From the sequence record NC_061451.1: a DNA stretch of 64,000 bases, one strand, 5' to 3'. The translations under genes were made by a program, and so were the position numbers. The stretch's first letter is position 1; each line of letters begins with the position of its first letter. Under the pieces are notes generated by a model that saw nothing but the letters and a program-made list of their open reading frames with translations, did no database searches and was not told the DNA's origin. This document shows positions 813 through 43,759 of the stretch, piece after piece.

Positions 813-820
813 CTGTAAAT
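813..820 (+). promoter_or_regulatory. CTGTAAAT candidate phage-sigma promoter box
   Basis: Intergenic, 33 nt upstream of the ORF at 854; the motif recurs before several genes. Confidence 0.5.
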
Positions 821-853
821 GATCTTACTTGGTTAACCTGTAGGATATTTGCG

Positions 854-1513
854 ATGGCGAAGTCAGTGAAAGAACGAAAAGCGGTTACGAAGATCGCTAA
901 AACAAAGAAGGGAAAAATTCCTATTCGCATTATCGAGGACACGCGCCCAATAATCATTTGCCCCGAGATGGAAGACAAACCTCGTCCGTTTCGTTTTCGC
1001 GGTCAGTGCCCGATAACAACCTGCCAGTATTGCACACGCGAAACTGCAACTGGCTGCATGTCGTTAGATCGTAAAGAGTCTTCCGACCGTTCTATCTCTA
1101 ACCGCGAGATTGCGTACTATAAGCGTAGCCTCTTTCCTGAACTTAAAGAGATGGATCAGAAACAGTTGGACACGACTGTTCGACGGGCACAGACTCGTAC
1201 CCGTACTGCTATCTGTCTCAATATGTTTATTGCCTCCGTTGATGATTCTGATTCTGATCGTTCATTTCAGTACGTGAAGGGCAGACACCCGTCAGTGGAC
1301 AATGTGCATAACTACATGGTTCAAACCTTTACCGACTACAGACCTTGGATGCTTGCCTATCTTGATGATGAGCAGCGCTTCGAAGAACTGGTCGGTAAGA
1401 TAGCAAATTCTGAATTTAATTTAGGTACAGCCTTGCGTCTTACGCCTCGTAAGTATCAGGTGTTCTGCAAAGCTCTAAACGACCTTAAACAATCTGGAGA
1501 AACCAATGAGTGA
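854..1513 (+). CDS. hypothetical protein with Cys cluster (possible Zn finger)
   Basis: CPEM...CPITTCQYC...GCM and a basic N-terminus. Confidence 0.7.
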   Translation: MAKSVKERKAVTKIAKTKKGKIPIRIIEDTRPIIICPEMEDKPRPFRFRGQCPITTCQYCTRETATGCMSLDRKESSDRSISNREIAYYKRSLFPELKEMDQKQLDTTVRRAQTRTRTAICLNMFIASVDDSDSDRSFQYVKGRHPSVDNVHNYMVQTFTDYRPWMLAYLDDEQRFEELVGKIANSEFNLGTALRLTPRKYQVFCKALNDLKQSGETNE

Positions 1514-3281
1514 TAACTTCATTACTCTTGAGCAATATCGCGCGATGATCGAACGCAACATCCTGACCGAACCCGCGATGTTAGTCAAGAACCAGACTCA
1601 GCCGCTTGGGCGAATCATCTTCCAAGCGCTGGGCGACAACATGCAGATGAAGGACATCATTGTTCCTGACTCTCGCAACGCGATTGACCTGACGCAGCAA
1701 GCGCCGCTGTCTAACCTGCTGGCCAGCTCGCAACTCAAGTCGCTGATTCAGCTTCGCCGTCTGGTAATCTTGAATCCGGATGATATGCCTGCACCAGAGC
1801 AAGGCATTAAGAAGCCTACTCTGTCGCAAGAGCCCGTTGCTGGCGCTACCTCGATCGATGGTACTACGATTCCAAACGCGACTGTTATCGTTGAGCAAAA
1901 CGGTAACGTCTGGACTGGTACTTCGAACGGTAGCGGTGCTTTCACTGTTGACGTGTCCGGACTTGCAGAAGGTCCATTCAGCGTAACAGTTACAGCCGAC
2001 AACTATGCGCCTTCGCGCTTCACTTACACCGCTGGTCCTCAGCCGTTGCAGCCGTACCCAGAACCTACTATTCATGCAGTCTTCAAAGAGACTCAGGTGA
2101 CAGGTACTACTGTGGCTGACGCGAACATCGTCGTCGAATTCGGCGGCAAGTCGTTCACAGGTCAGGCTACTAACGCCGGGGACTTTACCGTACCAACTGA
2201 CGCGCTGCCGTTCGATACCATCGTCGTCAAATTTGTCGCCGAAGGTTATCTGGATGCTCAGCGTAGCGTCAACACTTCATCCGTACCAGGCACTGCTACC
2301 ATCAGCGATCTCAAGTACCTCGTTACTGAAATCAATGGTACTGCAAGCCCTAGCGCTCAAGTCGAAGTGCTGGTGGATGGTCAGTCTAATCAGATCGTTA
2401 ACGCGAACATCGACGGCCTGTGGACTGCAACCGTGCAGCCTGTCAAAGGCGATGTGAATATCCGCAGTCTGGAAGTTAGCGGTTACGACGAAGCGACTGC
2501 AACTGTCAAGCCGACCACCAACACCATGGGCGCAATCACTATCGATAACGCAGACCAGTTCGGTGAGAACGAAACTGTCGTTACCGGTACTGTTGCAGGT
2601 CTGGATGAGAACGCGACCGACGTTGCTGTGACTGTTACTGTTCAGGCTGGCGTGTACGAAGGTACAGTCAATCTGTCTAACGGTACCTTCCGCGTTGAAG
2701 GCATCGATGCTAAAGCGGGTGTGGGTTCAAGTGGTGTCGTTGACATTACTTCGGCCTTCTACGAAGAAGCGTCCGAGTCGTTCACGATTCTGGAAGAGTT
2801 CTCTGTGCCGACTGTTACACAGGCACAGGACGGTGATACTTCAATCAAGGGTCAGACTTCAGGGTCTACCACTGTGAAGATCACTATGGGAAGTGAAACG
2901 AAGCAAGCATCTGCAACACCTCAGGGTGATTTTGAAGTTACTGGCTTCACCAACGTTGCGCCTGGTGCACTCACTATCGAGCTGTCTAAGTCAGGCTACC
3001 TGACCAAAACTTCTCAAGTGACGCTGGTCGTTCAGGCGTACGGCATTGCTGATGCAGCACCTAAGGTAGATGATACCACGGTGACTGGTCATGCAACGCA
3101 AGGTTCTACCGTTACCATTACTCAGGGTAGCGTAACTGGTGATGCACAAGCTGATGCGTCTACTGGTGAGTTCTCTGTAACTCTGTCTGGTCCGCTGACG
3201 GCAGGTGAGTTGCAATTCAAGGTGAGCCATGCTAACTACGTGGATTACACCGAAACTCTTACTGTGGCCGCTTCGGCCTAA
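1506..3281 (+). CDS. virion decoration/whisker-type protein with tandem bacterial Ig-like domains
   Basis: About six T/V/G-rich beta repeats, e.g. DTTVTGHATQGSTVTITQG...GEFSVT and ETQVTGTTVADANIVVEFG...GDFTVP. Confidence 0.75.
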   Translation: MSDNFITLEQYRAMIERNILTEPAMLVKNQTQPLGRIIFQALGDNMQMKDIIVPDSRNAIDLTQQAPLSNLLASSQLKSLIQLRRLVILNPDDMPAPEQGIKKPTLSQEPVAGATSIDGTTIPNATVIVEQNGNVWTGTSNGSGAFTVDVSGLAEGPFSVTVTADNYAPSRFTYTAGPQPLQPYPEPTIHAVFKETQVTGTTVADANIVVEFGGKSFTGQATNAGDFTVPTDALPFDTIVVKFVAEGYLDAQRSVNTSSVPGTATISDLKYLVTEINGTASPSAQVEVLVDGQSNQIVNANIDGLWTATVQPVKGDVNIRSLEVSGYDEATATVKPTTNTMGAITIDNADQFGENETVVTGTVAGLDENATDVAVTVTVQAGVYEGTVNLSNGTFRVEGIDAKAGVGSSGVVDITSAFYEEASESFTILEEFSVPTVTQAQDGDTSIKGQTSGSTTVKITMGSETKQASATPQGDFEVTGFTNVAPGALTIELSKSGYLTKTSQVTLVVQAYGIADAAPKVDDTTVTGHATQGSTVTITQGSVTGDAQADASTGEFSVTLSGPLTAGELQFKVSHANYVDYTETLTVAASA

Positions 3282-3284
3282 TGC

Positions 3285-3302
3285 AAGGGGCTTCGGCCCC
3301 TT
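3285..3302 (+). terminator. UUCG hairpin (terminator or mRNA-stabilising)
   Basis: AAGGGGC-TTCG-GCCCCTT; weak U tract. Confidence 0.55.
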
Positions 3303-3328
3303 AACAAAACAATTTCTGGAGAAAGACC

Positions 3329-4003
3329 ATGACAACCAAAGCCGCATCTTCGAGCAAAGTAAAGCCGATTACCCTGAACGCGTACAACGAACGCTACAAA
3401 GACGACTCCGTTGCTTCGCTGTATGTACTGAACCGTACTGAGCCGCGCGGTAACGTAGCATTCTCTGCTGTCAACGATCTGGGCCAGCCTATTGCCGTAG
3501 TAGTTCCAGCTACTTTCATTCCAATCGACCTGACCACTCAGGCGACTAAAGAAAGCCTGATGAAATCTACTCACTTCCGTCGTGCATTGAATCAGCGCCA
3601 GCTGGTCATTCTTGACAACGAAAGTGCAGAGAACTTCCTGCGCTCCAACCCTTTGGCTAAAACCGAAATGCGCAACCTGAGCCGCATCGACGGTCTGATT
3701 GCAAGCGATCTGAAAGAGATCGAAGGCTCTGATGATCTGGAAGAAATCGATCTGGGCGGTGGCGGCGGTCGTAAGAAGATTCGCCACTTCGAAGGCGATA
3801 ACATCTCGTCTAACCAGTTCGTTAACGCATTCATCTCTCGCGCCGCAGAAGACAGTCAAGAGTCTGATGAGAACCTTGAGCGTGAATTCCTGAACAAAGG
3901 TCTGAGCCTGCCTGTTGAAGAACTGGAGCTGCTGCGCAAGCACATCACCCGTCCTGCAATCGTTGAGCTGATCGTTCAGGCGCTGGACGAAGCCGAAGCG
4001 TAA
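3329..4003 (+). CDS. probable structural protein; N-terminal domain paralogous to that of 1506..3281
   Basis: VLNRTEPRGNVAF...IDLTTQA...RQLVIL aligns with VKNQTQPLGRIIF...IDLTQQA...RRLVIL. Confidence 0.7.
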   Translation: MTTKAASSSKVKPITLNAYNERYKDDSVASLYVLNRTEPRGNVAFSAVNDLGQPIAVVVPATFIPIDLTTQATKESLMKSTHFRRALNQRQLVILDNESAENFLRSNPLAKTEMRNLSRIDGLIASDLKEIEGSDDLEEIDLGGGGGRKKIRHFEGDNISSNQFVNAFISRAAEDSQESDENLEREFLNKGLSLPVEELELLRKHITRPAIVELIVQALDEAEA

Positions 4004-4025
4004 TCGTTCAAAAAAGCATTTAGAC

Positions 4026-4064
4026 AAAAAAAATGGGAGGCCCCGAAAGGAGTCTCCCATTTTT
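4026..4064. terminator. bidirectional intrinsic terminator
   Basis: A8-T-GGGAGGCCCC-GAAA-GGAGTCTCCC-ATTTTT between convergent genes. Confidence 0.85.
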
Positions 4065-4168
4065 GTTACAGCAACTTATTTTTCTGCTCTGCTCTAATAG
4101 CACGTTCTATGCGCGTATTGCCTAGATAACGAAAGTAACTAAGTCTGATAGAAGTCTGGTGCTCACGT

Positions 4169-5275
4169 TCACGTAGGTCGGCGAGCGTGTGACTTTTGAA
4201 CCTTCTTCTTGGCTTTAGCGCCATCTTTCTTTTCCTCTTTTATCGGACGTGCCCAGCCCAACTCTTTAGCAGGAACAAAACAGTTCTTGCCGTGAATCTC
4301 TCTGAGAAGTTCTTTGACTTCCTTGATGATCTGCATACTCGCATTATCAGGGTCGAGCTTAATCAGCTTGCCGTCTTCATCGAACTCACGAGGTAATTTG
4401 AAATGCTTAACTTGCAGTGGTGAGTTACGATCAAACTCCGCTTTGATTTTGTTGCGGAGCATCTTACCTGCTGCATCGTTATCTGTCATCGTGTAGACAA
4501 CGCTGATGCCTAACATCTCAATCGTTCTGCGTTTCGTTTCACCGAACTGCTCTGCACCCAGCACAGCGACTGCTGGAATGCCATACGACAATAGCGCAAG
4601 AGCATCACGCGGACCTTCAACGATCACAATGTACTTGAGTTTGTATTTCTTCAAACACTCTTTCGCTAACTGCAAGGGGAACAGGCCTTTATCCTTTGCC
4701 CAATCACCTTGCGAGTTTACATAGCTGGTGCCGTTCATCTGCTTTCTCAGATACGCAGCGATACCACCTATGTACTTTGTTCCATGCTTACACGGAAAGA
4801 AACAAATGCTTGTGCCTGTGCGCTGTGCATTCAACAAACCACCAGCAGCACGAACAAGCGCTCCAGGATATCCGCGCCATTCTTCATCGAGTGGCCAATC
4901 AAGATAGCTGTTACGACCGAGCGCTTTCATCAACAGACCAACTGACGGGTAAGTACCAATCTTCTGACCTATCTGCTCATACGTTCTGAGCAACGCACTT
5001 AACGAGTTCGTGCCAGCATCTTTAATCGCCCAGCCTTTGATCTCTTGGAGCTTCGCGTGCTGTGCTAACTTGTTCCAGCCGCCTTTCTCTCCGCAACCAA
5101 AACAGTGGAAGAAACCTAGAGGTATCTCCATGCCCACAGAAGTGTAAATACCACAACTAGGAGTCTTATCACTGTGGAAGGGACAACACACCATGATAGT
5201 GTCGCCGTTATATTTCTTATCGCCGGGTATCTTGCCTATTTCATCAAGAATTATCTGATGGACATCTTCTGCCAT
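4169..5275 (-). CDS. DNA primase (CHC2 zinc finger + TOPRIM)
   Basis: CPFHSDKTPSC...FHCFGCG; IVIVEGPRDAL; MTDNDAAG; GAGGA RBS before the ATG at 5275. Confidence 0.92.
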   Translation of the reverse strand: MAEDVHQIILDEIGKIPGDKKYNGDTIMVCCPFHSDKTPSCGIYTSVGMEIPLGFFHCFGCGEKGGWNKLAQHAKLQEIKGWAIKDAGTNSLSALLRTYEQIGQKIGTYPSVGLLMKALGRNSYLDWPLDEEWRGYPGALVRAAGGLLNAQRTGTSICFFPCKHGTKYIGGIAAYLRKQMNGTSYVNSQGDWAKDKGLFPLQLAKECLKKYKLKYIVIVEGPRDALALLSYGIPAVAVLGAEQFGETKRRTIEMLGISVVYTMTDNDAAGKMLRNKIKAEFDRNSPLQVKHFKLPREFDEDGKLIKLDPDNASMQIIKEVKELLREIHGKNCFVPAKELGWARPIKEEKKDGAKAKKKVQKSHARRPT

Positions 5276-5315
5276 ACCATCCTCTACTTGCTTCGTAATT
5301 TGAGCATATACGCAC

Positions 5316-5323
5316 ATTTACAG
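5316..5323 (-). promoter_or_regulatory. CTGTAAAT candidate promoter box on the - strand
   Basis: Oriented toward the primase, the only minus-strand gene, about 40 nt upstream of it. Confidence 0.55.
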
Positions 5324-5337
5324 TTTCTGGAGCTATC

Positions 5338-7128: not shown

Positions 7129-7136
7129 GGTAATAT

Positions 7137-7601: not shown

Positions 7602-7617
7602 GGAAGCATACGAAGAA

Positions 7618-12173: not shown

Positions 12174-12181
12174 CTGTAAAT
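12174..12181 (+). promoter_or_regulatory. CTGTAAAT candidate promoter box
   Basis: Intergenic, upstream of the sigma factor gene. Confidence 0.5.
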
Positions 12182-12214: not shown

Positions 12215-13252
12215 ATGAATAACAAGTCTAACCTGACAGGCGGTCAAATCGAAAGCGTTATGGACACGATGCTTCACGACTGCCTGAGGGAGATTGTTGA
12301 GAATACGGATATATTCGATGTGCAGCTAACGTACCTCTTGGCTCTCATCACGTCGAACAAAAAGCGTAAGCCCTACAACGCTCAAACCCGTGACCGTGCG
12401 ATCAGCCTTCTGATTCGTGCGCTTTCAGTTCCTCGTAATCAGAAGATGATCTACATTCAGGAACTGAAAATGGAACGCAACTTTATCTATGTGTTCCTGG
12501 AAAATGTAATTAAGCGGTACTACGTTACTTATGTTGATCTCTATCGCGCATTCATTTGCACGCAAGATGAGGTCAAGCGTAAAGCGTATGCGAATCGCCT
12601 GAACGTGTATGTCAAAATGTTCGGTGCTGATTCCCGCTCCAAACTGTTTGTTGCGCTGTGCCGCTTAAACGATTTAATGCCACAGTTCATGGAATACTTC
12701 CATAGTGTTGTCGGTGACTTCTATCGTCTGAGCAGCAAGCAAACGAAATTTTATATTGATACCAATAAAGGCAAGCTATACGACAGCAAGGACGTGCGTC
12801 AAAACTTCCTGCGCAATATCATTATTGCTATCAATAAGTATGACTCGTCGCGAGGTGCGATAGTCAGCTACGTGAAGTGGTGGATTCTGAATGCTCAAAC
12901 CTGTAGCAGCTCCGAGCATGAGTACGGTATTGCTTACACGATACCTCAGACTCAGCGTAAGAAACTCGCAACAGGTGAAGATAACACTTCAATGAATTTC
13001 TCGGTTAGTCTCGATGCTCCAACGTCTGAATCTGATGAAGGGGCGGACGCGTCCTTGCATCAAAAGGTGAGTGACCATCATCACCTTGAAGATCACGTTG
13101 ACAGCGAAAGACGTACTGAAAAACTGAGGCTGCTTATTAAGCGCGTTGACCCCTATGGAGTGGCCCGACTGACTATGGACGTCGGAGAGGAGTTCGATAA
13201 ATTCGAGCTGGAAAAAATGCAGCGACATATGCAGCTTCAAGGGCTAGCCTAA
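12215..13252 (+). CDS. phage-encoded sigma70-family RNA polymerase sigma factor
   Basis: Region 2-like DVRQNF...AINKYDSSRG...SYVKWWI; region 3.2-like VSLDAP. Confidence 0.8.
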   Translation: MNNKSNLTGGQIESVMDTMLHDCLREIVENTDIFDVQLTYLLALITSNKKRKPYNAQTRDRAISLLIRALSVPRNQKMIYIQELKMERNFIYVFLENVIKRYYVTYVDLYRAFICTQDEVKRKAYANRLNVYVKMFGADSRSKLFVALCRLNDLMPQFMEYFHSVVGDFYRLSSKQTKFYIDTNKGKLYDSKDVRQNFLRNIIIAINKYDSSRGAIVSYVKWWILNAQTCSSSEHEYGIAYTIPQTQRKKLATGEDNTSMNFSVSLDAPTSESDEGADASLHQKVSDHHHLEDHVDSERRTEKLRLLIKRVDPYGVARLTMDVGEEFDKFELEKMQRHMQLQGLA

Positions 13253-13254
13253 AA

Positions 13255-13262
13255 CTGTAAAC
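13255..13262 (+). promoter_or_regulatory. CTGTAAAC candidate promoter box
   Basis: Intergenic, upstream of the SSB gene. Confidence 0.5.
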
Positions 13263-13299: not shown

Positions 13300-14556
13300 A
13301 TGGGACGTGGATTTGGTGACATTCAGGACAACAGCAAACGCGATAGCCTTCGCGAGTCCGAAATTTTTGAAATCTTCCCTTTAGCGAAGAAAGCAAACGG
13401 CGCGTGGGTATCGATTCGTCTGTTGGACCTTGACCTGCTTCCAATCAAGAAGCACTGGATTAAGATCATGGGCGGGAAAGATAAAGATAAGGAAATCAAA
13501 ATCCCGCGTATGTGCGTCAGCTTCGACCCTGACAATCAGAACAAGCCGCTCAAAGGCATGAAGTGTCCGTACTGTGGTATTCAACACGGTAACGATGAGT
13601 CGGGCGCACCAGCGCAGTATGACTACAAGTGGTACGCGCAAGCAATCATCCGTGATGTGCAGGCCGGTGCTCCTCGCAAAATGCCGAGCATGACTAAGAA
13701 AGAACAAAAGTCAGGCAAGAAAGAAATGGGCAGCGAGTCTTGGACTCCTGTGCAGTGTATCGGTCTGTCAAACTCTCTGGCAAGTAAAATCCAGCAGCTG
13801 GGTGAGCGTAACATTCACACGGTCAAAGATAAGAAAACCGGTAAGAAGTCTAAGCAGGCGTTCCAGGTTAACCATCCGAAGTATGGCTGTGATATTGAAA
13901 TCAAATACAACGCCAAGAAATCTCCGGCTGAACGTTACACCCTCGAACGTGGCGATCATACTCCACTGACGAAAGATGAACAGGCGTATCTGACCTGGGA
14001 CTTCGACAACTGGAACGAAATCTACGACCTGCTGGGCCGTCTGGACGAAGATGCTGCTATGGCAGACTTCAAAAAGATGGACGTTCTCGGCGGTGAGTCT
14101 CAAGTCGATGGAGACGACGATGAAGACGAAGACGATGATGACGACATGGCGCTCGGCAAGAAAAAGAAAGGCGCCAAAGGCAAAGCGGACAAGAAAAAGC
14201 GCCGCTCAATGGACGATGATGACGAAGACGACGACGAAGACGATGAAGATGATCGTCCGTCAAAATCTAAGAAGTCCAAGTCCAAGTCGAAGTCTCGTGC
14301 TCTGTTAGACGACGATGAAGACGATGAGGACGAAGACGATAAGCCTAAGAAGAAAAAGAAATCTTCTAAGGACAAGCCGTCCAAGTCGTCTAAAGTGAAG
14401 TCCAAAAAGTCTAAGAAGTCAGATGATGACGACGAAGACGAAGACGACGAAGATGATAAGCCGAAGAAGAAAAAGAAATCCTCTTCGGTGAAGTCGTCGT
14501 CTAAGAAAAAGTCTTCGAAGGACGATGAGCCTAAGAAGAAAAAGAAAAAGAAGTAA
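13300..14556 (+). CDS. gp32-like single-stranded DNA-binding protein with long charge-block tail
   Basis: RMC...KCPYC Zn site; KYGCDIEIK; adjacent to recA; D/E and K/S blocks after about aa 265. Confidence 0.65.
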   Translation: MGRGFGDIQDNSKRDSLRESEIFEIFPLAKKANGAWVSIRLLDLDLLPIKKHWIKIMGGKDKDKEIKIPRMCVSFDPDNQNKPLKGMKCPYCGIQHGNDESGAPAQYDYKWYAQAIIRDVQAGAPRKMPSMTKKEQKSGKKEMGSESWTPVQCIGLSNSLASKIQQLGERNIHTVKDKKTGKKSKQAFQVNHPKYGCDIEIKYNAKKSPAERYTLERGDHTPLTKDEQAYLTWDFDNWNEIYDLLGRLDEDAAMADFKKMDVLGGESQVDGDDDEDEDDDDDMALGKKKKGAKGKADKKKRRSMDDDDEDDDEDDEDDRPSKSKKSKSKSKSRALLDDDEDDEDEDDKPKKKKKSSKDKPSKSSKVKSKKSKKSDDDDEDEDDEDDKPKKKKKSSSVKSSSKKKSSKDDEPKKKKKKK

Positions 14557-14615: not shown

Positions 14616-17117
14616 ATGGCAAAAGAGAAGAAGGCCAAAGCAAGCAAGAAAGCGAAAGCTGTTGCTTCTGATGACATTGGCGGGACCGTAGTAGAACTGT
14701 TTAGTCTGGGTAGCTACATGGACGACGTCCTCGATGCTATCGAAAAGAAGACGAAAGTTAGTTCCGCTGATGCTGCCCGACATGCTCCTCGTATCTCGAC
14801 CGGTGTGCTTGCTCTCGACATGTATCTGGATGGTGGTATCGTGCCTGGTGGCTGGTACACGTTCAGCGGCGGTGAGCAATCATGTAAGTCAACCATGACC
14901 ATGAGTATCATGGCCTCTCTTATTCGTCTCAAGTACAGCGGCATTAGCGTTGTGTTTGACTACGAAGGTTCCACCGATGCTGACTACGTTGCTGGTCAGC
15001 TCAAAACGTTCGGCGTTAAAGTCGATCCGAAAACTATCTTCGGTGTGCGTGATGAAGAAGGCGGCTGGATTATCAAGCCTACCATTCGCTACTACGCGCC
15101 TGACAACGGTGAGCGCTTCTTCGATTATATGTCGATGCTGCGTCGTCGTCTGCCTGACAAGATCGTTGAGAAAGACGGTTCAGCTTACTACCTCTTCGAG
15201 AACACCAAAGAGAACTCGAAGAAGCTGGCAGGCAAGTACGATAAGAAGTGGTTCAGTCGTAACAACCAGTTCAAAGTTCCTGCGCCGGATGGCCACATGC
15301 AGGCTGCTGTTATCGTTGACTCATATCCGGCAATGCTGCCTGATCAGGTCGATGATGACGACGGTTCAAAAGCAATGGCTCTGCAAGCGCGTATGTTCTC
15401 CGATGGCATCAAACGTTTCCGTGGCGGTATGCGCCGTAAGATGATGACTATCGTGGGCGTTAACCAGTTGCGCCAGAAGCCTGCTGTAATGTTCGGTAGC
15501 CCTGAATATGAGCCAGGCGGTGATGCGCTCAAGTTCTATTGCTTCGCTGATGACACGCGCATTCGTACCGACCACGGTGTGTTGACTGCACCTCAGATTA
15601 AAGCGCTGCTGGACGAAGGCAAAGAAGTTTGCGTTGAATCGTTCGAAGGCTTCCAGAAGATTAACGGTGCGTGGAAAGTTGAAGACGCTCCTTATCCGAT
15701 TGAAGTCAATGCTGGTGGCCATGTGTATATTGGCAGTGCTGAGCATCGCCAGTTCACCTTCATGCATGACACAACCGCAGAAGGTATGCGTGTACTTCGT
15801 CCTGAGTGGAACACGCTTAGCCAACTGGCTCAGTACCCTTCTGCGGAAGGTCAGTACGCTGCGATTCGTCTTGCGTCCGTCGAAGAACTCAAGCAGAACA
15901 CGCCTGATCAATTCGATGCCTCCAGCAAGAACATCGAGCTGGTGCTTTCTAACTGCGGTCCTGAGAAGCGTGATATTAATATCCTCTCTCATGACGGCAC
16001 AACGTACACAATGCCTGCTGTGCTGATCGACGCCGTTGGTCCTTACGATCACGTTGAAGACTTCGCGCATTACATTCAGGACTTCCTGAACATCGGTATC
16101 TATGCGTATGCAGACAACTCCGGTATCTGGATTCCTGGTCTGGTTGAAGCTGACCTGCACAACGCTGTTGCACGCGATGCAGACTCTGGTTATCAGGGCG
16201 TTGACTTCTACGCTACCTCGCGTCAGATCAGCTATCAGATGATGGCAGTTATCTCTGACGTGTTCCCAGAGCTGACCCGCTTCGTTCTGGACTTCAATGC
16301 CAAGTACGCCGCAGAACAGGAAGACGTAGTTTATCTGGCGCCTGGCTTTGACATTGCCGAAGCTATGGACGGCATTCTGCACAAAGAGATCAGCGGCTAC
16401 GACGACCAATACGATCTGCTGATGCAGCAACTGGCATACGTTGAAGACTGGTTCAGTGTTGATGACCGTCTGCTGCCTGTACCGTTTACGCTGCGTGCGC
16501 TTGACAAGCAAGTTGAGTTCTGGGATGTTAACGTCGATGAAACTTCCGTCGTTATCACCAACAACTTCGTTAGTCATAACAGTGACGTCCGCGTTCGTCT
16601 GGCCTCTCGCGCTGTGCCTGAAGGCTGGCCGAAACTCAAAGACGCGCCTGGCGTTGTCGGTGAGAAGTCTGTTTCTGTTGAAGGTGGTACTGACCGCTAT
16701 CGCTTCATTGCAGCCAAGACCATCAAGAACAAGATGGGCGGTATCCCTAACCAGTTGACGTGGTTACGCCTGTGGGAAGCTGACGGTAACGGTGAAGCGC
16801 GTGGCTTTGACCCCGTGTTCGATACATGGCACTACGTCAAAACTCTCGGCCTCGTCAACGGTACGCGCAAGTCATTCAAACTGAAAGCACCGTGCCCTGT
16901 AGCATCCGAAGTTAAGATGGATTGGGATGACTTCCGTACGCTGATCAACGGTAACAAAGAACAGATTGTTAGCGTGTGCAAAAAGCTGAAAGTCAAACCT
17001 GTATCTCTGCGTCTGTGGGCGTTCAAGTTCGTGCAGTCCCAGAAAGGCAAAGATATGTTGAAAGCGTCGATCAGTAAGTCCGTTAAGAACGTTAACGACG
17101 ACGAAGACGACGATTAA
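14616..17117 (+). CDS. recA: RecA/UvsX-like recombinase precursor containing an intein
   Basis: ISTGVLALD..L.GG; Walker A-like GGEQSCKST; VIVDS; ALQARMFS; VNQLR; PGGDALKFY. Confidence 0.92.
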   Translation: MAKEKKAKASKKAKAVASDDIGGTVVELFSLGSYMDDVLDAIEKKTKVSSADAARHAPRISTGVLALDMYLDGGIVPGGWYTFSGGEQSCKSTMTMSIMASLIRLKYSGISVVFDYEGSTDADYVAGQLKTFGVKVDPKTIFGVRDEEGGWIIKPTIRYYAPDNGERFFDYMSMLRRRLPDKIVEKDGSAYYLFENTKENSKKLAGKYDKKWFSRNNQFKVPAPDGHMQAAVIVDSYPAMLPDQVDDDDGSKAMALQARMFSDGIKRFRGGMRRKMMTIVGVNQLRQKPAVMFGSPEYEPGGDALKFYCFADDTRIRTDHGVLTAPQIKALLDEGKEVCVESFEGFQKINGAWKVEDAPYPIEVNAGGHVYIGSAEHRQFTFMHDTTAEGMRVLRPEWNTLSQLAQYPSAEGQYAAIRLASVEELKQNTPDQFDASSKNIELVLSNCGPEKRDINILSHDGTTYTMPAVLIDAVGPYDHVEDFAHYIQDFLNIGIYAYADNSGIWIPGLVEADLHNAVARDADSGYQGVDFYATSRQISYQMMAVISDVFPELTRFVLDFNAKYAAEQEDVVYLAPGFDIAEAMDGILHKEISGYDDQYDLLMQQLAYVEDWFSVDDRLLPVPFTLRALDKQVEFWDVNVDETSVVITNNFVSHNSDVRVRLASRAVPEGWPKLKDAPGVVGEKSVSVEGGTDRYRFIAAKTIKNKMGGIPNQLTWLRLWEADGNGEARGFDPVFDTWHYVKTLGLVNGTRKSFKLKAPCPVASEVKMDWDDFRTLINGNKEQIVSVCKKLKVKPVSLRLWAFKFVQSQKGKDMLKASISKSVKNVNDDEDDD
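15540..16580 (+). mobile_element. intein (347 aa) in RecA
   Basis: Starts with Cys (KFY|CFADDT); block B SAEH; block F/G FWDVNV...FVSHN|S with +1 Ser; removal restores ALKFYSDVRVRL. Confidence 0.92.
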
Positions 17118-17161: not shown

Positions 17162-17545
17162 ATGCGTACTCTGATTCATACCGCAGACGTAACCAATCTG
17201 TCTGTGCTGGAACTGGAAGAAGGCTCTGTAGCAAAGCCTGTTACTCCAAATCTGATTTCTGATCTCAAAGAGCTGCTGTCACGCGAAAACCTGAGCCAGA
17301 ACATTCGCCACGTTGTGTTCATCTCTGCTGATCAGGTCGGCGTATTCACCGAAGCTGAGATGATCAACTACTTCGACCCAATCGAGCAGGTGTCTGAAAT
17401 CAACGCAGGCAATATCGGTACTGTGCTGGCTATGCAGGTTATTCGTGTCGATGACAAGACTAATCTGATCGCAGTGGCTGGTGTCACTGATGTGGAAGAA
17501 GGCGTTACTATCAACGAGTTCAACGCATCGCCTGTAAATCTGTAA
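17162..17545 (+). CDS. hypothetical protein
   Basis: GGAG RBS; acidic beta-rich ORF. Confidence 0.75.
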   Translation: MRTLIHTADVTNLSVLELEEGSVAKPVTPNLISDLKELLSRENLSQNIRHVVFISADQVGVFTEAEMINYFDPIEQVSEINAGNIGTVLAMQVIRVDDKTNLIAVAGVTDVEEGVTINEFNASPVNL

Positions 17546-17547
17546 AT
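17532..17547 (+). promoter_or_regulatory. tandem CTGTAAAT boxes followed by an 11-bp hairpin (17553-17578)
   Basis: CTGTAAAT-CTGTAAAT; AAGTGAGGGCA-ATCG-TGTCCTCACTT; the second copy overlaps a Leu-stop. Confidence 0.45.
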
Positions 17548-17615: not shown

Positions 17616-18338
17616 ATGACAATCAAATTTGTCGAAGTACCGAACATTAGTATGTTCGAGGGTCTGGTGCATGGCGCCAACCGACACGCACAAAACGCCA
17701 ACATCGGCGGCAAGGCTCGTTACGCATTCTACGTGGATGTGACAGAAGCTGCGGCAGAAGCTGCACTGTATTCAATGTTGCGCAAGAAGGCACACGCAGA
17801 TGTTAGAGCTGTGGGCTACTCTGTTTCTCATACTGTTCGCGGTATGACTCAACCTAAAGAGATTCCTGTTTTCTTGTCGGACAATTTGTCTCACATATCA
17901 TTGGATTCTTTGAAACAAAATTTATGTGAGTTGCTTCGTGCGCTGTGTCGTTCAGCCGCCAGCTCGGATAGCAATATCATTCTGTATTACCAAAAGGACA
18001 TGGCTTTCATCAAAAGCAAAATGTTCGATTGGGTTCTTGAAAGCAAGTTAAGCAGACCTTCAAAAGTAGACTGCGAACTGTATGTTCGTTCCTCAAACAT
18101 TGATCTTAACGTCCTTCTTAATATCGTTAGAGATCACGATTATATCGGACACTTTGCATCTAGCATACCACAAGAGATTACAATAGGCTCTGATGCGAGT
18201 GCCATAGATGCCGTCAAGTTATGTGACACAGCCGACGTACTGGCTGCTCAAGGCCGCAAAGTGCATCTGTGCAATGACATTTACCGCAAAGCGGTGTCTA
18301 TCTCCTTTGCCGACGGTATTCCGCGTAATCAACTGTAA
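17616..18338 (+). CDS. hypothetical protein
   Basis: AGGAG RBS; 240 aa; no motif recognised. Confidence 0.75.
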   Translation: MTIKFVEVPNISMFEGLVHGANRHAQNANIGGKARYAFYVDVTEAAAEAALYSMLRKKAHADVRAVGYSVSHTVRGMTQPKEIPVFLSDNLSHISLDSLKQNLCELLRALCRSAASSDSNIILYYQKDMAFIKSKMFDWVLESKLSRPSKVDCELYVRSSNIDLNVLLNIVRDHDYIGHFASSIPQEITIGSDASAIDAVKLCDTADVLAAQGRKVHLCNDIYRKAVSISFADGIPRNQL

Positions 18339-18382
18339 ACCAAACACATTGCTGTGTGTAGTCTTTGGCCAAACTTAGGCTC

Positions 18383-18409
18383 GGGAGTCCAGGACGGGCT
18401 CCCATTTTT
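18383..18409 (+). terminator. intrinsic terminator
   Basis: GGGAGTCC-AGGAC-GGGCTCCC-ATTTTT. Confidence 0.75.
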
Positions 18410-20299: not shown

Positions 20300-20373
20300 G
20301 AATAATCTTAGTCCGCTAACTAATTTAAAAACGTTGGCAAGTAGTGCTGACGTCTAGTTATCGGAGACATAAC

Positions 20374-21002: not shown

Positions 21003-21042
21003 ATATGCTAATTTCTACCTACATTCAACTAGGAGAGACAGC

Positions 21043-26515: not shown

Positions 26516-27121
26516 ATGTTCACCAAAGCATTCTTCTTCAAAACTAACTACTCTGTATTGGCCGAAGGTGAGTTCGCGCTGCCTGTTGACTCACTGACCT
26601 CTCTCGTCAACTCGCGTATTTTCATCTGCATCACAGAAGACAACCTGCGCTTCGCACTGACCAACATCACTGTGCAGCCGATTCGCAATGGCTTCTTGCG
26701 CGTTGGCTTCGAGCCGAAGACTGACGTGAATGCAATCACTACTCCAATCATCACGCCTAAAACGATGTGGAGCGAGTATGATTTTGATGCGTGCAGTGTC
26801 GAAAACATTCCGTCATTCAATATCAGTACGCATGAAGACAAGAACAACGAACAACTGATTGCACTGTCATATGACCTTCGTATGGCTCTCATGCATTATC
26901 GTGAAGGCATGTACTGCGTGACCGACATCGTTTTGCGTCTGCATGAACACGGCATTTTCGTTGTAGATATTGATCAGAATCTCAAGGTTGCTCTCTCGCC
27001 TATCGCCGTGCTTAGCGAACGACCTACACATGCGATTAGTCTGAGCAAAGACAACGGCGTGCTGTCCCGCATTGATGACTTCGAGCTGCCTGATCTCGCT
27101 AAACTGATCGTCCTACTGTAA
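26516..27121 (+). CDS. hypothetical protein
   Basis: Co-oriented ORF; start uncertain (26492 or 26516). Confidence 0.7.
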   Translation: MFTKAFFFKTNYSVLAEGEFALPVDSLTSLVNSRIFICITEDNLRFALTNITVQPIRNGFLRVGFEPKTDVNAITTPIITPKTMWSEYDFDACSVENIPSFNISTHEDKNNEQLIALSYDLRMALMHYREGMYCVTDIVLRLHEHGIFVVDIDQNLKVALSPIAVLSERPTHAISLSKDNGVLSRIDDFELPDLAKLIVLL

Positions 27122-27133
27122 ACAAACAACTCT

Positions 27134-27163
27134 AGCCTCGCATCGTGCGGGGCTTTCTGCTTT
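27134..27163 (+). terminator. intrinsic terminator
   Basis: AGCCTCGCA-TCG-TGCGGGGCT-TTCTGCTTT. Confidence 0.65.
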
Positions 27164-28123: not shown

Positions 28124-28155
28124 AGGGCTGCCATCTTGGTGGCCCTTTTTGTTTT
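28124..28155 (+). terminator. intrinsic terminator
   Basis: AGGGCTGCC-ATCTT-GGTGGCCCT-TTTTGTTTT. Confidence 0.8.
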
Positions 28156-28163
28156 CTGTAAAC
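28156..28163 (+). promoter_or_regulatory. CTGTAAAC candidate promoter box
   Basis: Immediately after a terminator and before a new gene run. Confidence 0.5.
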
Positions 28164-36969: not shown

Positions 36970-36982
36970 TTAAGGAAAGATT

Positions 36983-38224: not shown

Positions 38225-38234
38225 GGTTAGTATC

Positions 38235-38498: not shown

Positions 38499-38503
38499 AA
38501 ACT

Positions 38504-38812: not shown

Positions 38813-38831
38813 AAAACACGTGGAGAATAAA

Positions 38832-39151: not shown

Positions 39152-39152
39152 A

Positions 39153-39485: not shown

Positions 39486-39543
39486 AGGTAACGCTCATGT
39501 GTTTGCTAGTCAATTTCCTCAAGGACGAGGGTACGATGCGTAT

Positions 39544-39551
39544 CTGTAAAC
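39544..39551 (+). promoter_or_regulatory. CTGTAAAC candidate promoter box
   Basis: Intergenic, about 30 nt upstream of 39583. Confidence 0.45.
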
Positions 39552-39582
39552 GTATACAACAACCCAACTAAAGGTAGCGATC

Positions 39583-39948: not shown

Positions 39949-39958
39949 GGAAACAATC

Positions 39959-40663
39959 ATGACAAGTAAATTTGAAAAGTCGGATGCATCTACTCGCCGC
40001 GCCGAACTGCTGGTACTGATGTGTGAGATCTACACGTCATTGCGTGACCAGTCGTTGTCTGAGTCAGAGACAAAAGCCTTTGCGTTGTTCAAAGACATTA
40101 TGGATTTGGCTGACGTGCGCACAGTCGATGCCGTGTTTTCTGAAATCGAACACGAACTGGATCCTAAAGTTGAAGGTCTGCTGAATTATGTCCACAGAAC
40201 GTTTATGCTGCATGACACTCTGTGCAAAGCTGAGGCAGAAGCCGCAGCAAAACTCAAAGCTGAGGAGGCGCGTGAGCATGTACGCAAACACACGTACAAG
40301 CCTCCTGTGGAAAAGCTCATTAGTAAAGAGCAGATAACCGAACTGTGTGCAGGCCTGACTGCATACGTTGAACGCGAAGATGTTCGACCTAAAGTCAACG
40401 TCGATCTTATCGATGATATCCTCGAATCGTTGGACAAGAACTACACGTTCATCGACACGCTCGACCTGTCCAATCACCTTGAAGGTGAAGATCTGAAAAC
40501 TGCCGTCAAGCTGATTGAAGACGCAGTGACCGAGAGCCACCAACCACTGAAAGAAGTCATGGACACTATCTGGTGCCACATGGCTAAACGCGATTTGCCT
40601 GCCGTTGACTTCTTTGACCAATACGGCAATGCCGAAGATGAGAACTATGCACTTGCACCTTAA
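39959..40663 (+). CDS. helical acidic hypothetical protein
   Basis: AAGG RBS; 234 aa. Confidence 0.75.
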   Translation: MTSKFEKSDASTRRAELLVLMCEIYTSLRDQSLSESETKAFALFKDIMDLADVRTVDAVFSEIEHELDPKVEGLLNYVHRTFMLHDTLCKAEAEAAAKLKAEEAREHVRKHTYKPPVEKLISKEQITELCAGLTAYVEREDVRPKVNVDLIDDILESLDKNYTFIDTLDLSNHLEGEDLKTAVKLIEDAVTESHQPLKEVMDTIWCHMAKRDLPAVDFFDQYGNAEDENYALAP

Positions 40664-40844
40664 ACGTTATTGGCGGGCACTCATTGTGTTGCTCGTCGTT
40701 TTCATCATTAGTTGTTTGCTGCCCATTCTTGAAGTGCGCAACCCAACACTGACTCTTATCGTGGTCGTGATTGTTGCCTGCTACTTCATTGCAGTCTGGG
40801 CATACAAACCTGTTAAAGCAATTAAGGAAGAGTTGGATGACTAG
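40647..40844 (+). CDS. small membrane protein
   Basis: Two transmembrane-like segments. Confidence 0.6.
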   Translation: MHLHLKRYWRALIVLLVVFIISCLLPILEVRNPTLTLIVVVIVACYFIAVWAYKPVKAIKEELDD

Positions 40845-41394
40845 TCGTAAGAACGAGGTCAAGTTGACTGACGCTGAGATAGCCGCAGGCGCACGGCAGA
40901 TACTTGAGATGCTGGTTAGTATGCGTCTCAGTGCGCATCATCAGGATGTCGGCTATGAAACGCTGTACACCGATTCTTTGGGTGAGACGCAGGGCGGTTG
41001 GTACGTAGCATTCGACAGCATGAGCCGTACTCGACTCAAAGAATCCAAAGCTGTATCGTGGCGCAACGTTGGCATGGTCTCTGGTGATTCGCTCGAAGAT
41101 GTTCTCACAACGCTACGAACGCTCCGCCGCGATATGTCCAATCGCGTACATGCGCCCACACCAGAAGAACGTGAGCGCGTACTCAACTTGCGTGATAGCA
41201 ACATACGCAACGCACTGACTAAGTTCCACAAGGGTGAGTCGCTGTCTGATGGTGAACTCAACCTGAGCATTAAGCATTTTCAGTCGTTAGAGAATGCGCT
41301 TCGCGTAGATGAGTTGTTGCAACTTGCAGCACCCTACATTACTCAGAATCTCAACGTGCTCTTAGGATATAAAGAAGCACGCCGTCGCAAATAA
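40837..41394 (+). CDS. hypothetical protein
   Basis: Overlaps the upstream stop. Confidence 0.7.
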   Translation: MTSRKNEVKLTDAEIAAGARQILEMLVSMRLSAHHQDVGYETLYTDSLGETQGGWYVAFDSMSRTRLKESKAVSWRNVGMVSGDSLEDVLTTLRTLRRDMSNRVHAPTPEERERVLNLRDSNIRNALTKFHKGESLSDGELNLSIKHFQSLENALRVDELLQLAAPYITQNLNVLLGYKEARRRK

Positions 41395-41399
41395 CAATC

Positions 41400-41430
41400 G
41401 GGAGATCCCTAACAAGGGGTTTCCCTTTTT
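41400..41430 (+). terminator. intrinsic terminator
   Basis: GGGAGATCCCT-AACA-AGGGGTTTCCC-TTTTT. Confidence 0.8.
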
Positions 41431-41450
41431 GCATTTCTGGAGCAAATTTT

Positions 41451-42431
41451 ATGCGTTTTGGTTTCGCCTGCAAACTGCTTGATGACAACGGTAAACAACC
41501 GTACACGAACAAGAGCCTGAGCTATGCTCACTTCTCCAAGCTGTCTCAGACAGAGCAGCAAGAAAAGCTGGTGCTCGTCGTCACACACAATCTGACCTCG
41601 TTACTTGAGATGATCAGACACGTTGGTCGTCTGCGTACAGACTTGCGCATGTTTCGAATCACAAGCGAGCTACTTCCGCTGTTCACGCACCCGATGGTCA
41701 CACGCATGTATCTCCAAACACACATGACCAAACTGACAGACACGATGTTGGCAACATGTGGTGCAGCGGCTAGACGTCTTGGTGTTCGACTGTCATTCCA
41801 CCCTGGTCAGTTTACCGTGCTTGCGTCTGACCGACCCGACGTTATGCTCAACTCGATTAACGAAATGGAATATCACGCCTACTGTGCGCAGGCTATGGGC
41901 TACGGTCGTAAGTTCCAAGATTTCAAAATCAACATTCATTTGAGTGGTCGTCGTGGTGCCACAGGTTTCAGAGACGCCTACTCTCGTCTAAGCGATCATT
42001 GTCGCAAGATGATCACGGTAGAGAATGACGAGTACACTTCCTCGATCGAGGATTGTCTTGAGCTTGCCGACATTTGTCCTGTTGTTCTCGACATTCACCA
42101 TCACTGGGTAATGACTAACGAATACATTCAGCCGACCGATGATCGTGTTCAACGTGTCATTGACTCGTGGCGAGGCGTTCGCCCTGTTGCGCATTACTCT
42201 GTGTCACGCCCAGAGTTCATACCGTCTACAGGTCTGCCTGATCAGAACAAGCTAGAAGCAAAGTCTGCCTCGCTGCGTGCTCATTCTGACTACTACCACA
42301 ATGACAGCGTAAACGAGTGGGCCCTCAGCTTCGAGCAATTCGACCTGATGTGCGAGTCTAAAGCGAAGAATCTAGCACGCACGAAACTAGCCCTTTTTAA
42401 GGGCAACTCTGCACAAATATGGTCAAAATAA
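41451..42431 (+). CDS. uvsE: UV damage endonuclease (UVDE/UvsE)
   Basis: FRITSELLP; RLSFHPGQF; ENDE; DIHHH; HSD; ESKAKNLA. Confidence 0.93.
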   Translation: MRFGFACKLLDDNGKQPYTNKSLSYAHFSKLSQTEQQEKLVLVVTHNLTSLLEMIRHVGRLRTDLRMFRITSELLPLFTHPMVTRMYLQTHMTKLTDTMLATCGAAARRLGVRLSFHPGQFTVLASDRPDVMLNSINEMEYHAYCAQAMGYGRKFQDFKINIHLSGRRGATGFRDAYSRLSDHCRKMITVENDEYTSSIEDCLELADICPVVLDIHHHWVMTNEYIQPTDDRVQRVIDSWRGVRPVAHYSVSRPEFIPSTGLPDQNKLEAKSASLRAHSDYYHNDSVNEWALSFEQFDLMCESKAKNLARTKLALFKGNSAQIWSK

Positions 42432-42464
42432 GGCTTGTTTTAGAAGGTGCCCCTATGATACACT
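42411..42464 (+). promoter_or_regulatory. early promoter, family member 5
   Basis: GCACAAATATGGTCAAAAT-N5-TTGTTT-N18-TACACT with extended TG. Confidence 0.8.
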
Positions 42465-42515
42465 GATTACGAGCACTGTATGCTCGTTTCTACTGATTCA
42501 AGAGGATAAGACAAT

Positions 42516-42812
42516 ATGTTCATTACAACTCTAAACGCAAACACTGCGAAACCTGCACCGAAAGCAATCAACCACATGAACCTCGACCTTGCACCTTCTG
42601 GTCGCATTTCTTGTGTCTGGCCTGGCGCACTCGATGTTCCTGCGAACATCAAACGTTTCTGCCGTGCTTGTGAAATCATTACCGACCTTGACCCATGTAT
42701 GCGTCTTCGTTTCAAAGGTCGTCGCTCTGACGTTCTGGCGCTCATTACCAAGATCGCTCCTGACAACCCTGACCTCGCAGCGCGAATTGCGGGCACTATC
42801 ACTGAGGCTTAA
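42516..42812 (+). CDS. hypothetical protein
   Basis: GAGGA RBS; first gene after the promoter. Confidence 0.75.
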   Translation: MFITTLNANTAKPAPKAINHMNLDLAPSGRISCVWPGALDVPANIKRFCRACEIITDLDPCMRLRFKGRRSDVLALITKIAPDNPDLAARIAGTITEA

Positions 42813-42813
42813 A

Positions 42814-43077
42814 ATGAAAATCCCCTGTCTGAATGCTGTGTATGGTATTACGAACACCAATACTCCACTCGTGGATAAACGCGGCTTTCGTTGTATTGAA
42901 TCGAAATATGTTGACGGAACGGAGGTTAGATTACAACGACAAGCCCATGACATTCATGAACGTGTGGTAGTGGCCTATGACCAGTATGGTCGTGCAGTGT
43001 ATGGAACACTGACTCCGCCCGCATCGTTCGAAGTGCGTGACAGCAAGGAAAGCGACCAATATAACAAGGCGCCCTAG
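42814..43077 (+). CDS. hypothetical protein
   Basis: GAGG RBS. Confidence 0.6.
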   Translation: MKIPCLNAVYGITNTNTPLVDKRGFRCIESKYVDGTEVRLQRQAHDIHERVVVAYDQYGRAVYGTLTPPASFEVRDSKESDQYNKAP

Positions 43078-43155
43078 CAAGCTCACAACGAAGCCATAGA
43101 ATGAATACTAAGAAGTCTAACAATTCATGCGCTGACCTACTCGTGGGGTGTCAAA

Positions 43156-43533
43156 ATGATCGTAGTATGTAACTCTTCAAAGGAATTTTCTGTTGAACGT
43201 TTGAAACACGGGGACGCATTTGTATTCGGCAAGACGCGAATGCTTCTGCGAGCGGACTATCTGATACTAACAGATAAGCACAATGCTTTTTACGTGGTTC
43301 GCAAATCTGATGTTGTTTGGGCTCCCGAATTAACTGGCGCTACGCACATGATTAAGATCAGGGCGTATGCCCAGATTAAGCCGTTCGAACTCCATGCAGC
43401 ATGTCCACAGTTCAATGGTCGTGTTTACGGAACAATCGCTTTCCGTAACCCACACTTTGAACATAGAATGAATACACTTCGTTATAGTGAGACAATCTTT
43501 GGAGGTCAACATGGCACGGTATCATGTGTTTAG
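43156..43533 (+). CDS. hypothetical protein
   Basis: Co-oriented ORF. Confidence 0.6.
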   Translation: MIVVCNSSKEFSVERLKHGDAFVFGKTRMLLRADYLILTDKHNAFYVVRKSDVVWAPELTGATHMIKIRAYAQIKPFELHAACPQFNGRVYGTIAFRNPHFEHRMNTLRYSETIFGGQHGTVSCV

Positions 43534-43759
43534 TGCAGAAAGCAAATACTACGGCGAAGCATACGAGGGAACGCACTTAAAAGCGATTGACCTCGGGTAC
43601 CCAGTTACCCACGCCGAGTTTAAAAATTTCGAGAGTGCTAAGGAATGCGCAGATAAGTTACATGAGGTTTGCGATATGGGCTGGATTGTATACAACGCTT
43701 TTTCAGAAGTACCTGTATACGACAGCCGCACTATTGAAGGTGAGTCTGTAAATAACTAA
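43511..43759 (+). CDS. hypothetical protein
   Basis: GGAGG RBS. Confidence 0.7.
   Translation: MARYHVFSAESKYYGEAYEGTHLKAIDLGYPVTHAEFKNFESAKECADKLHEVCDMGWIVYNAFSEVPVYDSRTIEGESVNN
43746..43753 (+). promoter_or_regulatory. CTGTAAAT candidate promoter box
   Basis: At the 3' end of the upstream gene, before a structured leader and ORF 43831. Confidence 0.4.

Follow-up and report, generated by a model that had tools for sequence, protein, structure and literature searches.

A lone CTGTAAAY box as a candidate promoter of replication genes in Erwinia phage pEa_SNUABM_7 and related jumbo phages

INTRODUCTION

Jumbo phages without an RNA polymerase of their own are assumed to redirect the host enzyme by means of phage sigma factors. 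A 2026 review goes no further than to say that recruitment of the host polymerase to phage-specific promoters by such factors is "likely" (PMC13282480). Here, we analyze the short element CTGTAAAY in a 64,000-nucleotide (nt) stretch of DNA (the window), which is identical (100% identity) to bases 186001-250000 of Erwinia phage pEa_SNUABM_7 (SNU7; NC_061451.1, genus Snuvirus, 265,635 bp). The host of SNU7 is Erwinia amylovora. An initial annotation of the window had proposed that CTGTAAAY is a single-element middle/late promoter, similar to T4 late promoters and read by the phage sigma factor encoded at 12215 (gp244).

Several described systems provide a frame for this proposal. The T4 late promoter is a lone TATAAATA element in the -10 region, which is read by gp55 together with gp33 and the gp45 clamp. 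The T4 middle promoter combines a MotA box at -30 with a sigma-70 -10 element. In SPO1, the host sigma factor is succeeded by the phage sigma factor gp28 for middle genes and then by gp33/34 for late genes, each encoded in the preceding class.

The motif itself was predicted earlier in phage Lu11. Its GenBank record (JQ768459.1; 2012) contains 16-nt "putative middle/late promoter" features of the form CTGTAAAT-N5-GTA, one of them before the SSB gene. Separate features are annotated there as "early promoter consensus TTGACA(N15-17)TATAAT". We found no paper that tests the motif or describes it for Erwinia or Dickeya phages, and none that deals with the promoters of SNUABM phages; neither promoters nor sigma factors are mentioned in the AD1/JA paper, and a search with the raw motif returned unrelated primer papers. 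The motif is already known as a prediction in Lu11, and the kind of system is familiar. New here are the assignment of the box to a gene class, a separate late box, a second sigma-like protein, a cascade hypothesis and the breadth of conservation.

RESULTS AND DISCUSSION

CTGTAAAY lies upstream of genes and follows the direction of transcription

CTGTAAAY occurs 12 times in the window, compared with 3.94 ± 2.01 expected copies, and none of 100 dinucleotide shuffles reached this number. The plus-strand copies start at 813, 12174, 13255, 17532, 17540, 18333, 27116, 28156, 39544, 43746 and 63359, and the minus-strand copy is at 5316-5323, exactly where the initial annotation had placed them. For genome-wide statistics, we used the whole SNU7 genome with its full RefSeq annotation. 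Genes were also called with a simple procedure based on open reading frames (ORFs) and codon usage, which yielded 333 genes (RefSeq, 346), scored 93% of the genome as coding and gave the same gene starts as RefSeq in the window. An alternative genetic code was not required.

Genome-wide, 43 copies were found: 21 are intergenic, 22 are in coding DNA in the sense orientation, and none is antisense. Intergenic DNA represents 6.8% of the genome (binomial P = 7e-14 for 21 of 43). This bears out the intergenic and strand-oriented enrichment that had been suggested as a check of the promoter proposal. The reversed word, used as a control, has 15 copies in the genome, none of them intergenic, 5 sense and 10 antisense. 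In upstream windows of SNU7, CTGTAAAY was detected 34 times in sense and once in antisense orientation. Most boxes (35/43) are no more than 110 nt from a start codon, typically at a distance of 31 to 61 nt. The strand of the box corresponds without exception to the local direction of transcription: plus in the two plus-strand blocks, minus in the minus-strand block and at the minus-strand primase gene. An unbiased 7-mer screen of upstream regions returned CTGTAAA as the top word apart from ribosome-binding sites and terminators, and a survey of all 129 upstream gaps of at least 35 nt revealed two additional motifs, described below.

The box resembles a -10 element without a -35 partner

Alignment of the 35 gene-proximal copies revealed the full element AAW-CTGTAAAY-A-N4-(G/A)TA. 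In the box consensus TGTAAAYA, the second base, G, is invariant, as is the preceding C. Counted from this C, position 9 is A, and position 16 is A in 21 of the 35 sites. In many sites of SNU7, Lu11 and JA29, positions 14 to 16 are (G/A)TA, a pyrimidine-purine start context. This pattern suggests that transcription starts at the A approximately 7 nt after the box, which would place the box at about -15 to -8. The predicted start agrees with the distance of 5 to 8 nt expected in the initial annotation. No -35 partner was detected in the 35 aligned sites, with less than 0.2 bit of information at each position from -45 to -4. In this respect, the box behaves as a -10-type element that stands alone, as originally proposed.

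We compared the box with the known types of promoter. Like a host extended -10 element, it has T-A at the would-be -12/-11 and a TG just upstream; the TG abuts TAAAYA without a spacer base, position -7 is A, and the pattern TGnTATAAT is not present. The T4 late promoter also lacks a -35 element and has its start about 6 to 7 nt downstream, and TGTAAATA differs from the T4 sequence at one base. In contrast to the T4 late promoter, the SNU7 box precedes replication and not virion genes, carries an invariant C in front of the box and does not match the TATAAATA consensus. The T4 middle promoter is comparable in its role, which is to turn on replication genes after the early phase, but the SNU7 box is itself at the -10 position. 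A MotA-type layout was not found, as there is neither a conserved hexamer at box positions 20 to 35 nor a -10 hexamer 11 to 13 bp downstream. The features in the Lu11 record are alike in core and layout (CTGTAAAT, 5 nt, GTA; A-rich upstream), lie in sense orientation just upstream of genes and include the same syntenic SSB site. They differ in that the Lu11 annotation is a prediction that lumps middle with late, whereas the SNU7 box excludes virion genes and a separate late box can be defined. A likeness to the E. coli sigma-E -10 element was considered and dropped; PMC6648896 lists no more than "GTC" as the consensus of that element.

The genomic context of the boxes points to a promoter. Boxes located directly after intrinsic terminators number six each in SNU7 and AD1, four in PaBG and three in GR7B. 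The promoter of the primase gene must be contained, together with the box, in a 62-nt gap, because the genes on both sides diverge. Furthermore, the replication region (window 11.5-29 kb) contains fewer sigma-70-like sites than expected (12 compared with 19.6), and another promoter type is therefore needed there. We consider it very probable, judging from the sequence, that CTGTAAAY is a promoter.

The box is conserved at orthologous genes

The box was followed in eight phages: SNU7, AD1, JA29, Lu11, PaBG, Vibrio phage GR7B, Xanthomonas phage PhiXhv-12 (Xhv12) and the Pseudomonas putida phage Peetri. The ratios of sense to antisense TGTAAAY in their upstream windows are 35:4, 30:4, 28:3, 33:1, 16:4, 28:4, 9:0 and 15:1, and TGTAAAY is enriched there in all eight and among the top upstream 7-mers in the phages compared. 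At orthologues of box-bearing SNU7 genes, the strict box is much more frequent than at orthologues of other genes: 24/30 versus 9/249 in AD1, 12/18 versus 4/162 in JA29, 6/12 versus 2/60 in Lu11, 3/12 versus 1/76 in PaBG and 4/10 versus 1/31 in GR7B. The box thus recurs at orthologous genes in jumbo phages of Dickeya, Pseudomonas, Vibrio and Xanthomonas.

The site before the SSB gene illustrates this conservation. Despite diverged flanks, the box persists there in SNU7, and it is strict in AD1, Yoloswag, JA29, Lu11, GR7B and Peetri, with variants in Xhv12 and PaBG. The primase box is strict in AD1, JA29, Lu11, PaBG and Xhv12 and loose in Peetri. In the distant phages, boxes were found before primase, clamp loader, PolA, helicase and SSB genes, and not before capsid, portal and protease genes. 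Homologues of gp244 are present in 81 phage records, and the synteny of sigma, SSB and RecA genes was found in all relatives examined.

The box marks replication genes and is distinct from late and host-type signals

Each annotated gene was assigned to the nearest upstream signal on its own strand. Of the 23 genes annotated as virion or lysis genes, 20 are under a second box, YTAATTT, and none is under CTGTAAAY. The 23 genes for DNA/RNA metabolism are distributed differently: 11 are under CTGTAAAY, 5 in the host-type class and 4 under YTAATTT. The difference between CTGTAAAY and YTAATTT across the gene groups yielded a Fisher P of 3e-6. Genes under CTGTAAAY include those for primase (gp229), SSB, UvsX, clamp loader, NAD ligase, ParB, the sigma protein gp244 and gp179, a family A DNA polymerase (PolA; Pfam E 9e-53). 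The late assignment made in the initial annotation does not fit these counts. Probably, the box marks the replication ("middle") class rather than the late class. PolA, primase, SSB, clamp loader and ligase are proposed as a core replication regulon.

The second box, (A)n(G)YTAATTT, is situated 29 to 53 nt before the start codon in 16 of 20 cases. In upstream windows, YTAATTT was counted 21 times in sense and twice in antisense orientation. It is otherwise avoided, with 5 copies in the window versus 19.7 expected; outside the window, its copies cluster in front of virion genes. An example in the window is (G)CTAATTT at 21008-21014 (plus strand), 35 nt before gp253. This late-type box is conserved in AD1, JA29, PaBG and Lu11, and the parts of the Lu11 record that were examined contain no annotation of it. 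We regard YTAATTT as a candidate late promoter. Further YTAATTT boxes are located at 20320-20326 of the window and at genome positions 5315, 47713, 79908, 86686, 120237, 158009 and 169707.

The third class is TGnTATAAT (TGNTATAAT), which corresponds to a host sigma-70-like extended -10 element. Seven copies are present in the window, all on the plus strand (20425, 24749, 29470, 35456, 45875, 51343 and 56572), compared with 1.08 expected, and they precede small genes of unknown function; the copy at 45875-45883 has the sequence TGCTATAAT. These sites are probably early promoters for host sigma-70. A genome scan for canonical -35/-10 promoters returned few good sites, and the early class consists mainly of extended -10 elements. 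Several TGNTATAAT sites have the word CTGGACARA and a hairpin approximately 30 nt upstream; CTGGACARA occurs 13 times in the genome, with 7 copies within genome 231-258 kb.

SNU7 encodes two sigma-like proteins

The gp244 gene (window 12215-13252, plus strand; PHROG 17569, E 3e-156) encodes a protein with sigma-70 region 1.2 and region 2 and a C-terminus without an assigned fold. It has no Pfam match and no direct sequence match in the PDB, and Pfam searches of the whole SNU7 genome for Sigma70_r2 and Sigma70_r4 returned no matches. However, a profile of the gp244 family matched RpoD region 1.2-2.4 with E 2.6e-5. In a Foldseek search with the AlphaFold model (pLDDT 80.7), almost all of the top 50 hits were sigma factors, with E. 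coli sigma-70 as the best one, and comparison with the sigma-70 fragment 1sig yielded a VIA Z score of 12.4 over 221 residues. The family also keeps the aromatic melting residues Y..WW. With regard to region 4, which reads the -35 element, positions 285-341 within the last 60 residues are confidently modeled as three helices, for which no clear structural match emerged. According to the model and the profile, gp244 is a true sigma-70-family protein with region 2.

The second protein, gp345, is encoded outside the window (genome 264045-265184), is annotated as hypothetical and belongs to an operon behind a TTGACC-17-TATAAT promoter. It is homologous to PaBG gp112 (E 1e-28), a protein rated by the PaBG authors as a possible sigma factor (PMC7412058). 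Searches with gp345 gave no Pfam match, no sequence match in the PDB and Foldseek E values of 0.2 or worse. With the predicted structure (pLDDT 81.2), the top seven VIA matches of residues 142-255 are all ECF sigma domain 2 (Z 9.4-7.7, root mean square deviation 2.4-4.8 Å, 71-93 residues), and the C-terminus weakly matches sigma-A domain 4 (Z 5.8). Residues 142-255 additionally show a weak match (Z 6.5) to chain 7d7d_F of the T4 gp45-dependent transcription complex, which we take to be T4 gp55. These model comparisons suggest gp345 as an ECF-like sigma candidate. A homologue of gp55 was not detectable in SNU7 by sequence, and both candidate readers of the box are larger than T4 gp55, with extra N- and C-terminal domains. 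The genes adjoining UvsX (gp247-gp254) and gp243 were also screened for a second sigma factor, and none was found among them.

The genes of the two families are preceded by different promoters. Those of the gp345 family are behind sigma-70 consensus promoters in SNU7 (TTGACC-17-TATAAT), PaBG and GR7B (TTGACA-17-TATAAT). Those of the gp244 family are behind CTGTAAAY boxes in SNU7, AD1, JA29, Xhv12 and Peetri, and no host-type promoter was found upstream of them in any of the eight phages. The proposal that gp244 reads the box was weakened by this result, since the box also precedes the gene of gp244 itself and gp345 is at least as good a candidate. From the initial interpretation as a whole, we retained a promoter box that stands alone, resembles T4 late promoters and is connected with a phage sigma program. 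The late class was not retained, and the reader may be a sigma-like protein other than gp244.

A probable middle-gene box in a proposed sigma cascade

A phage-made sigma-like factor of one kind or the other is the likely reader of the box, and it would redirect the host core RNA polymerase to it. In the cascade that we favor, host sigma-70 would read the TGnTATAAT and TTGACA/TATAAT promoters, and the ECF-like gp345 would be among the products. The gp345 protein would then read CTGTAAAY, leading to expression of the replication genes and of the RpoD-like gp244. Finally, gp244 would read the late box (G)YTAATTT, an extended -10-like G-n-TAnnnT element, before the virion genes. Under this scheme, CTGTAAAY would switch on the middle genes for DNA replication and recombination in SNU7 and in a wide lineage of jumbo phages with the sigma-SSB-RecA cluster. 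We put the probability of this explanation as a whole, a middle-gene box with gp345 followed by gp244, at roughly 0.4.

As the reader of CTGTAAAY, gp345 is our tentative choice. It fits this role because an activator of the middle class must exist before middle transcription, and gp345 sits behind sigma-70 promoters. Expression logic thus discriminates modestly between the readers, in favor of gp345. By analogy with sigma-70, the late box, with G at -14 and TAATTT corresponding to TAnnnT, would suit a sigma factor with RpoD-like region 1.2/2 such as gp244. We infer the pairing of sigma factors and boxes; what was observed are the sigma folds and the type of promoter before each sigma gene. The layout matches that of SPO1, as sigma-70 promoters precede gp345 and the box precedes gp244. 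Unlike the bipartite promoters of SPO1 (-35 and -10), those of the two phage-specific classes of SNU7 are single elements, and the SNU7 cascade is a proposal. More doubtful is the extension to a conserved two-sigma relay in jumbo phages of Erwinia, Dickeya, Yersinia, Pseudomonas, Vibrio and Xanthomonas, in which gp345 would read CTGTAAAY and gp244 would then read YTAATT-type boxes.

Several observations weigh against the scheme. Promoter function of CTGTAAAY is itself deduced from DNA sequence, and the gene classes depend on our own simple caller (333 versus 346 RefSeq genes) and on RefSeq product names. A search for sequencing runs that match SNU7 turned up DNA runs and no RNA run. In JA29, a hairpin and a T-run come immediately after 6 of 26 gene-proximal boxes, the opposite of the terminator-then-box order, and the window boxes at 18333 and 27116 are likewise followed by a terminator, which is odd for a promoter. 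For gp345, the sigma assignment depends on structural similarity of a helical domain, with Z scores below 10. According to profile searches, both sigma-like families are present in 8 of 8 phages, so their presence or absence cannot separate the readers. The better-conserved protein is gp244 and the better-conserved box is CTGTAAAY, fitting the opposite pairing. Moreover, the head of the gp345 operon also carries CTGTAAAY boxes in four phages.

The opposite pairing deserves serious attention, although we consider it somewhat less likely than the favored one. Here, gp244 would read CTGTAAAY, including its own promoter, and would amplify itself after leaky read-through, and gp345 would read YTAATTT or have another role. 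This is in line with the status of gp244 as a bona fide sigma-70-family protein with conserved Y..WW, and with the synteny of box and sigma gene everywhere. Both gp244 and the TGTAAAY core are kept in the eight phages down to 21-24% identity of the protein, and gp345 falls to 15-16%. Further, GR7B, Peetri and Xhv12, which are the most distant of the eight and have the most diverged gp345, no longer carry the exact word TAATTT. However, virion genes in these phages still carry YTAATT-like words, which weakens the coevolution argument; a coevolution test of the sigma-box pairing was discarded as nondiscriminating for the same reason. The opposite pairing also leaves no evident source of the first gp244, given the lack of a host-type promoter upstream of its gene and the terminators that separate the upstream genes. 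In addition, T at -7 is normally required for recognition of a -10 element by sigma-70. With the start at position 16, the box lacks this T, which an RpoD-type region 1.2/2 sigma would need, and TAATTT has it.

Two other explanations dispense with a phage sigma factor at the box, and both fare worse. It is improbable that host sigma-70 holoenzyme reads CTGTAAAY, be it as a weak -10 element, after phage modification or with a phage activator. The T-A and TG of the box recall a -10 element, RefSeq annotates an RNA polymerase ADP-ribosylase (gp209), and, as is textbook knowledge, T4 replication genes use sigma-70 with MotA/AsiA. But MotA/AsiA homologues did not come up in SNU7, and the box has neither a -35 element nor a TAnnnT hexamer at a fixed distance downstream. 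The evident host-type promoters of this phage are near-consensus TGnTATAAT or TTGACC-17-TATAAT, unlike the box, which is invariant across phages of Vibrio, Xanthomonas, Pseudomonas and Erwinia, all with two sigma-like genes. Very improbable is a signal at the RNA level or at gene ends, such as a processing site, a site for an RNA-binding protein or a stop-codon context. Such a signal would explain the sense orientation, the copies that supply an upstream stop codon (five, see below) and the terminators that follow the box in JA29 and at the two window sites. It is hard to reconcile with the many copies downstream of strong terminators, where little RNA arrives, and with the copy in the primase gap, which has no upstream transcript on its strand. 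The fixed purine start context 7 nt downstream and the association with a functional gene class, not with gene ends in general, also speak for a promoter.

SNU7 is a biocontrol phage against fire blight, and the results provide a testable map for it and for related phages. This map comprises the coordinates of three promoter classes, the predicted start site, the core replication regulon and two candidate sigma proteins. Because the box hardly varies among phages whose hosts are very different, it is useful as an annotation marker, and if its reader is identified, it would provide a portable, orthogonal promoter-sigma pair. If the two-sigma relay is true, these phages would run an SPO1-style relay from T4-late-style promoters, with a middle box almost frozen across hosts.

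Individual boxes in the window

The first CTGTAAAT box (813-820, plus strand) is intergenic, 41 nt before gp225 (start at 854), and the strict box is kept at the AD1 and JA29 orthologues. The CTGTAAAT box at 5316-5323 is on the minus strand, 48 nt before the DnaG-type primase gene gp229 (4169-5275, minus strand; PHROG 47, E 8e-28; Pfam Toprim_2 and Zn_ribbon_DnaG). This gene had been described as the only minus-strand gene. It is indeed on the minus strand, and in RefSeq the small gp228 behind it is as well. In the divergent gap between the primase gene and gp230 (5276-5337), the minus-strand CTGTAAAT box overlaps a plus-strand CGTAATTTG word before gp230. The gap may contain back-to-back promoters of different classes.

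The CTGTAAAT box at 12174-12181 (plus strand) lies 41 nt before the sigma gene gp244; the same box is found in AD1 and JA29, and a variant, CTGTAAAG, in Yoloswag. It is followed by the CTGTAAAC box at 13255-13262 (plus strand), 45 nt before the SSB gene gp245 (13300-14556, plus strand; RefSeq product). This site has GTA at box positions 14 to 16, and the predicted start is at about 13270.

Tandem CTGTAAAT-CTGTAAAT boxes are located at 17532-17547 (plus strand), 84 and 76 nt before gp248. In the second copy, the TAA also terminates gp247. Downstream lies a hairpin that lacks a T-run, and the AD1 orthologue keeps the box. The CTGTAAAC box at 18333-18340 (plus strand) overlaps the stop of gp248, 94 nt before gp249, with a terminator (18383-18403) in between, and it too is kept at the AD1 orthologue. 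Similarly, the CTGTAAAC box at 27116-27123 (plus strand) overlaps the stop of gp260, 58 nt before gp261, and a terminator (27134-27154) intervenes. The copies at 17540, 18333 and 27116 had been attributed to Leu-stop codons. This does not account for them: genome-wide, the TAA of the box doubles as the stop codon of the preceding gene in five cases, compared with 0.64 expected. Because of the intervening terminators, the boxes at 18333 and 27116 are weaker promoter candidates.

The CTGTAAAC box at 28156-28163 (plus strand) is 43 nt before gp264 and is kept at the AD1 orthologue. As had been noticed, it directly follows a terminator (28124-28146). The CTGTAAAC box at 39544-39551 (plus strand) precedes gp292 by 39 nt according to our gene call and by 78 nt according to the RefSeq start; it is not kept at the AD1 orthologue. 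The CTGTAAAT box at 43746-43753 (plus strand) falls within the final codons of gp300 at a distance of 85 nt from the start of gp301, and the AD1 orthologue keeps it. The remaining CTGTAAAC copy (63359-63366, plus strand), already recognized as internal to a coding sequence, is within gp330, 2,696 nt from the next start. It is probably a chance occurrence, as about 4 chance copies are expected per window.

Additional observations

The JA29 boxes followed by a terminator include those before the genes at 14517, 24935, 30938, 195344 and 241716. The UvsX/RecA-like gene of SNU7 (window 14616-17117, plus strand) encodes a protein of 833 amino acids (aa), and the Pfam RecA domain spans only the first approximately 310 residues; the additional part has no assigned domain. 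The proteins of AD1 and Yoloswag are similar in length, and those of JA29, PaBG and Lu11 have about 500 aa.

No ORF longer than 71 aa was found in a 1.3-kb stretch of the minus strand outside the window (genome 86657-87973). It has a CTGTAAAT box at its start and ends with a terminator and a GCTAATTT box before a PAAR gene. The stretch contains no tRNA and has no Rfam match, and the fold z-scores are approximately -1.9 per half. It could represent a long noncoding transcript or a decayed gene. Its counterpart in AD1 is a gene-free gap of similar size, in which only the ends are conserved.

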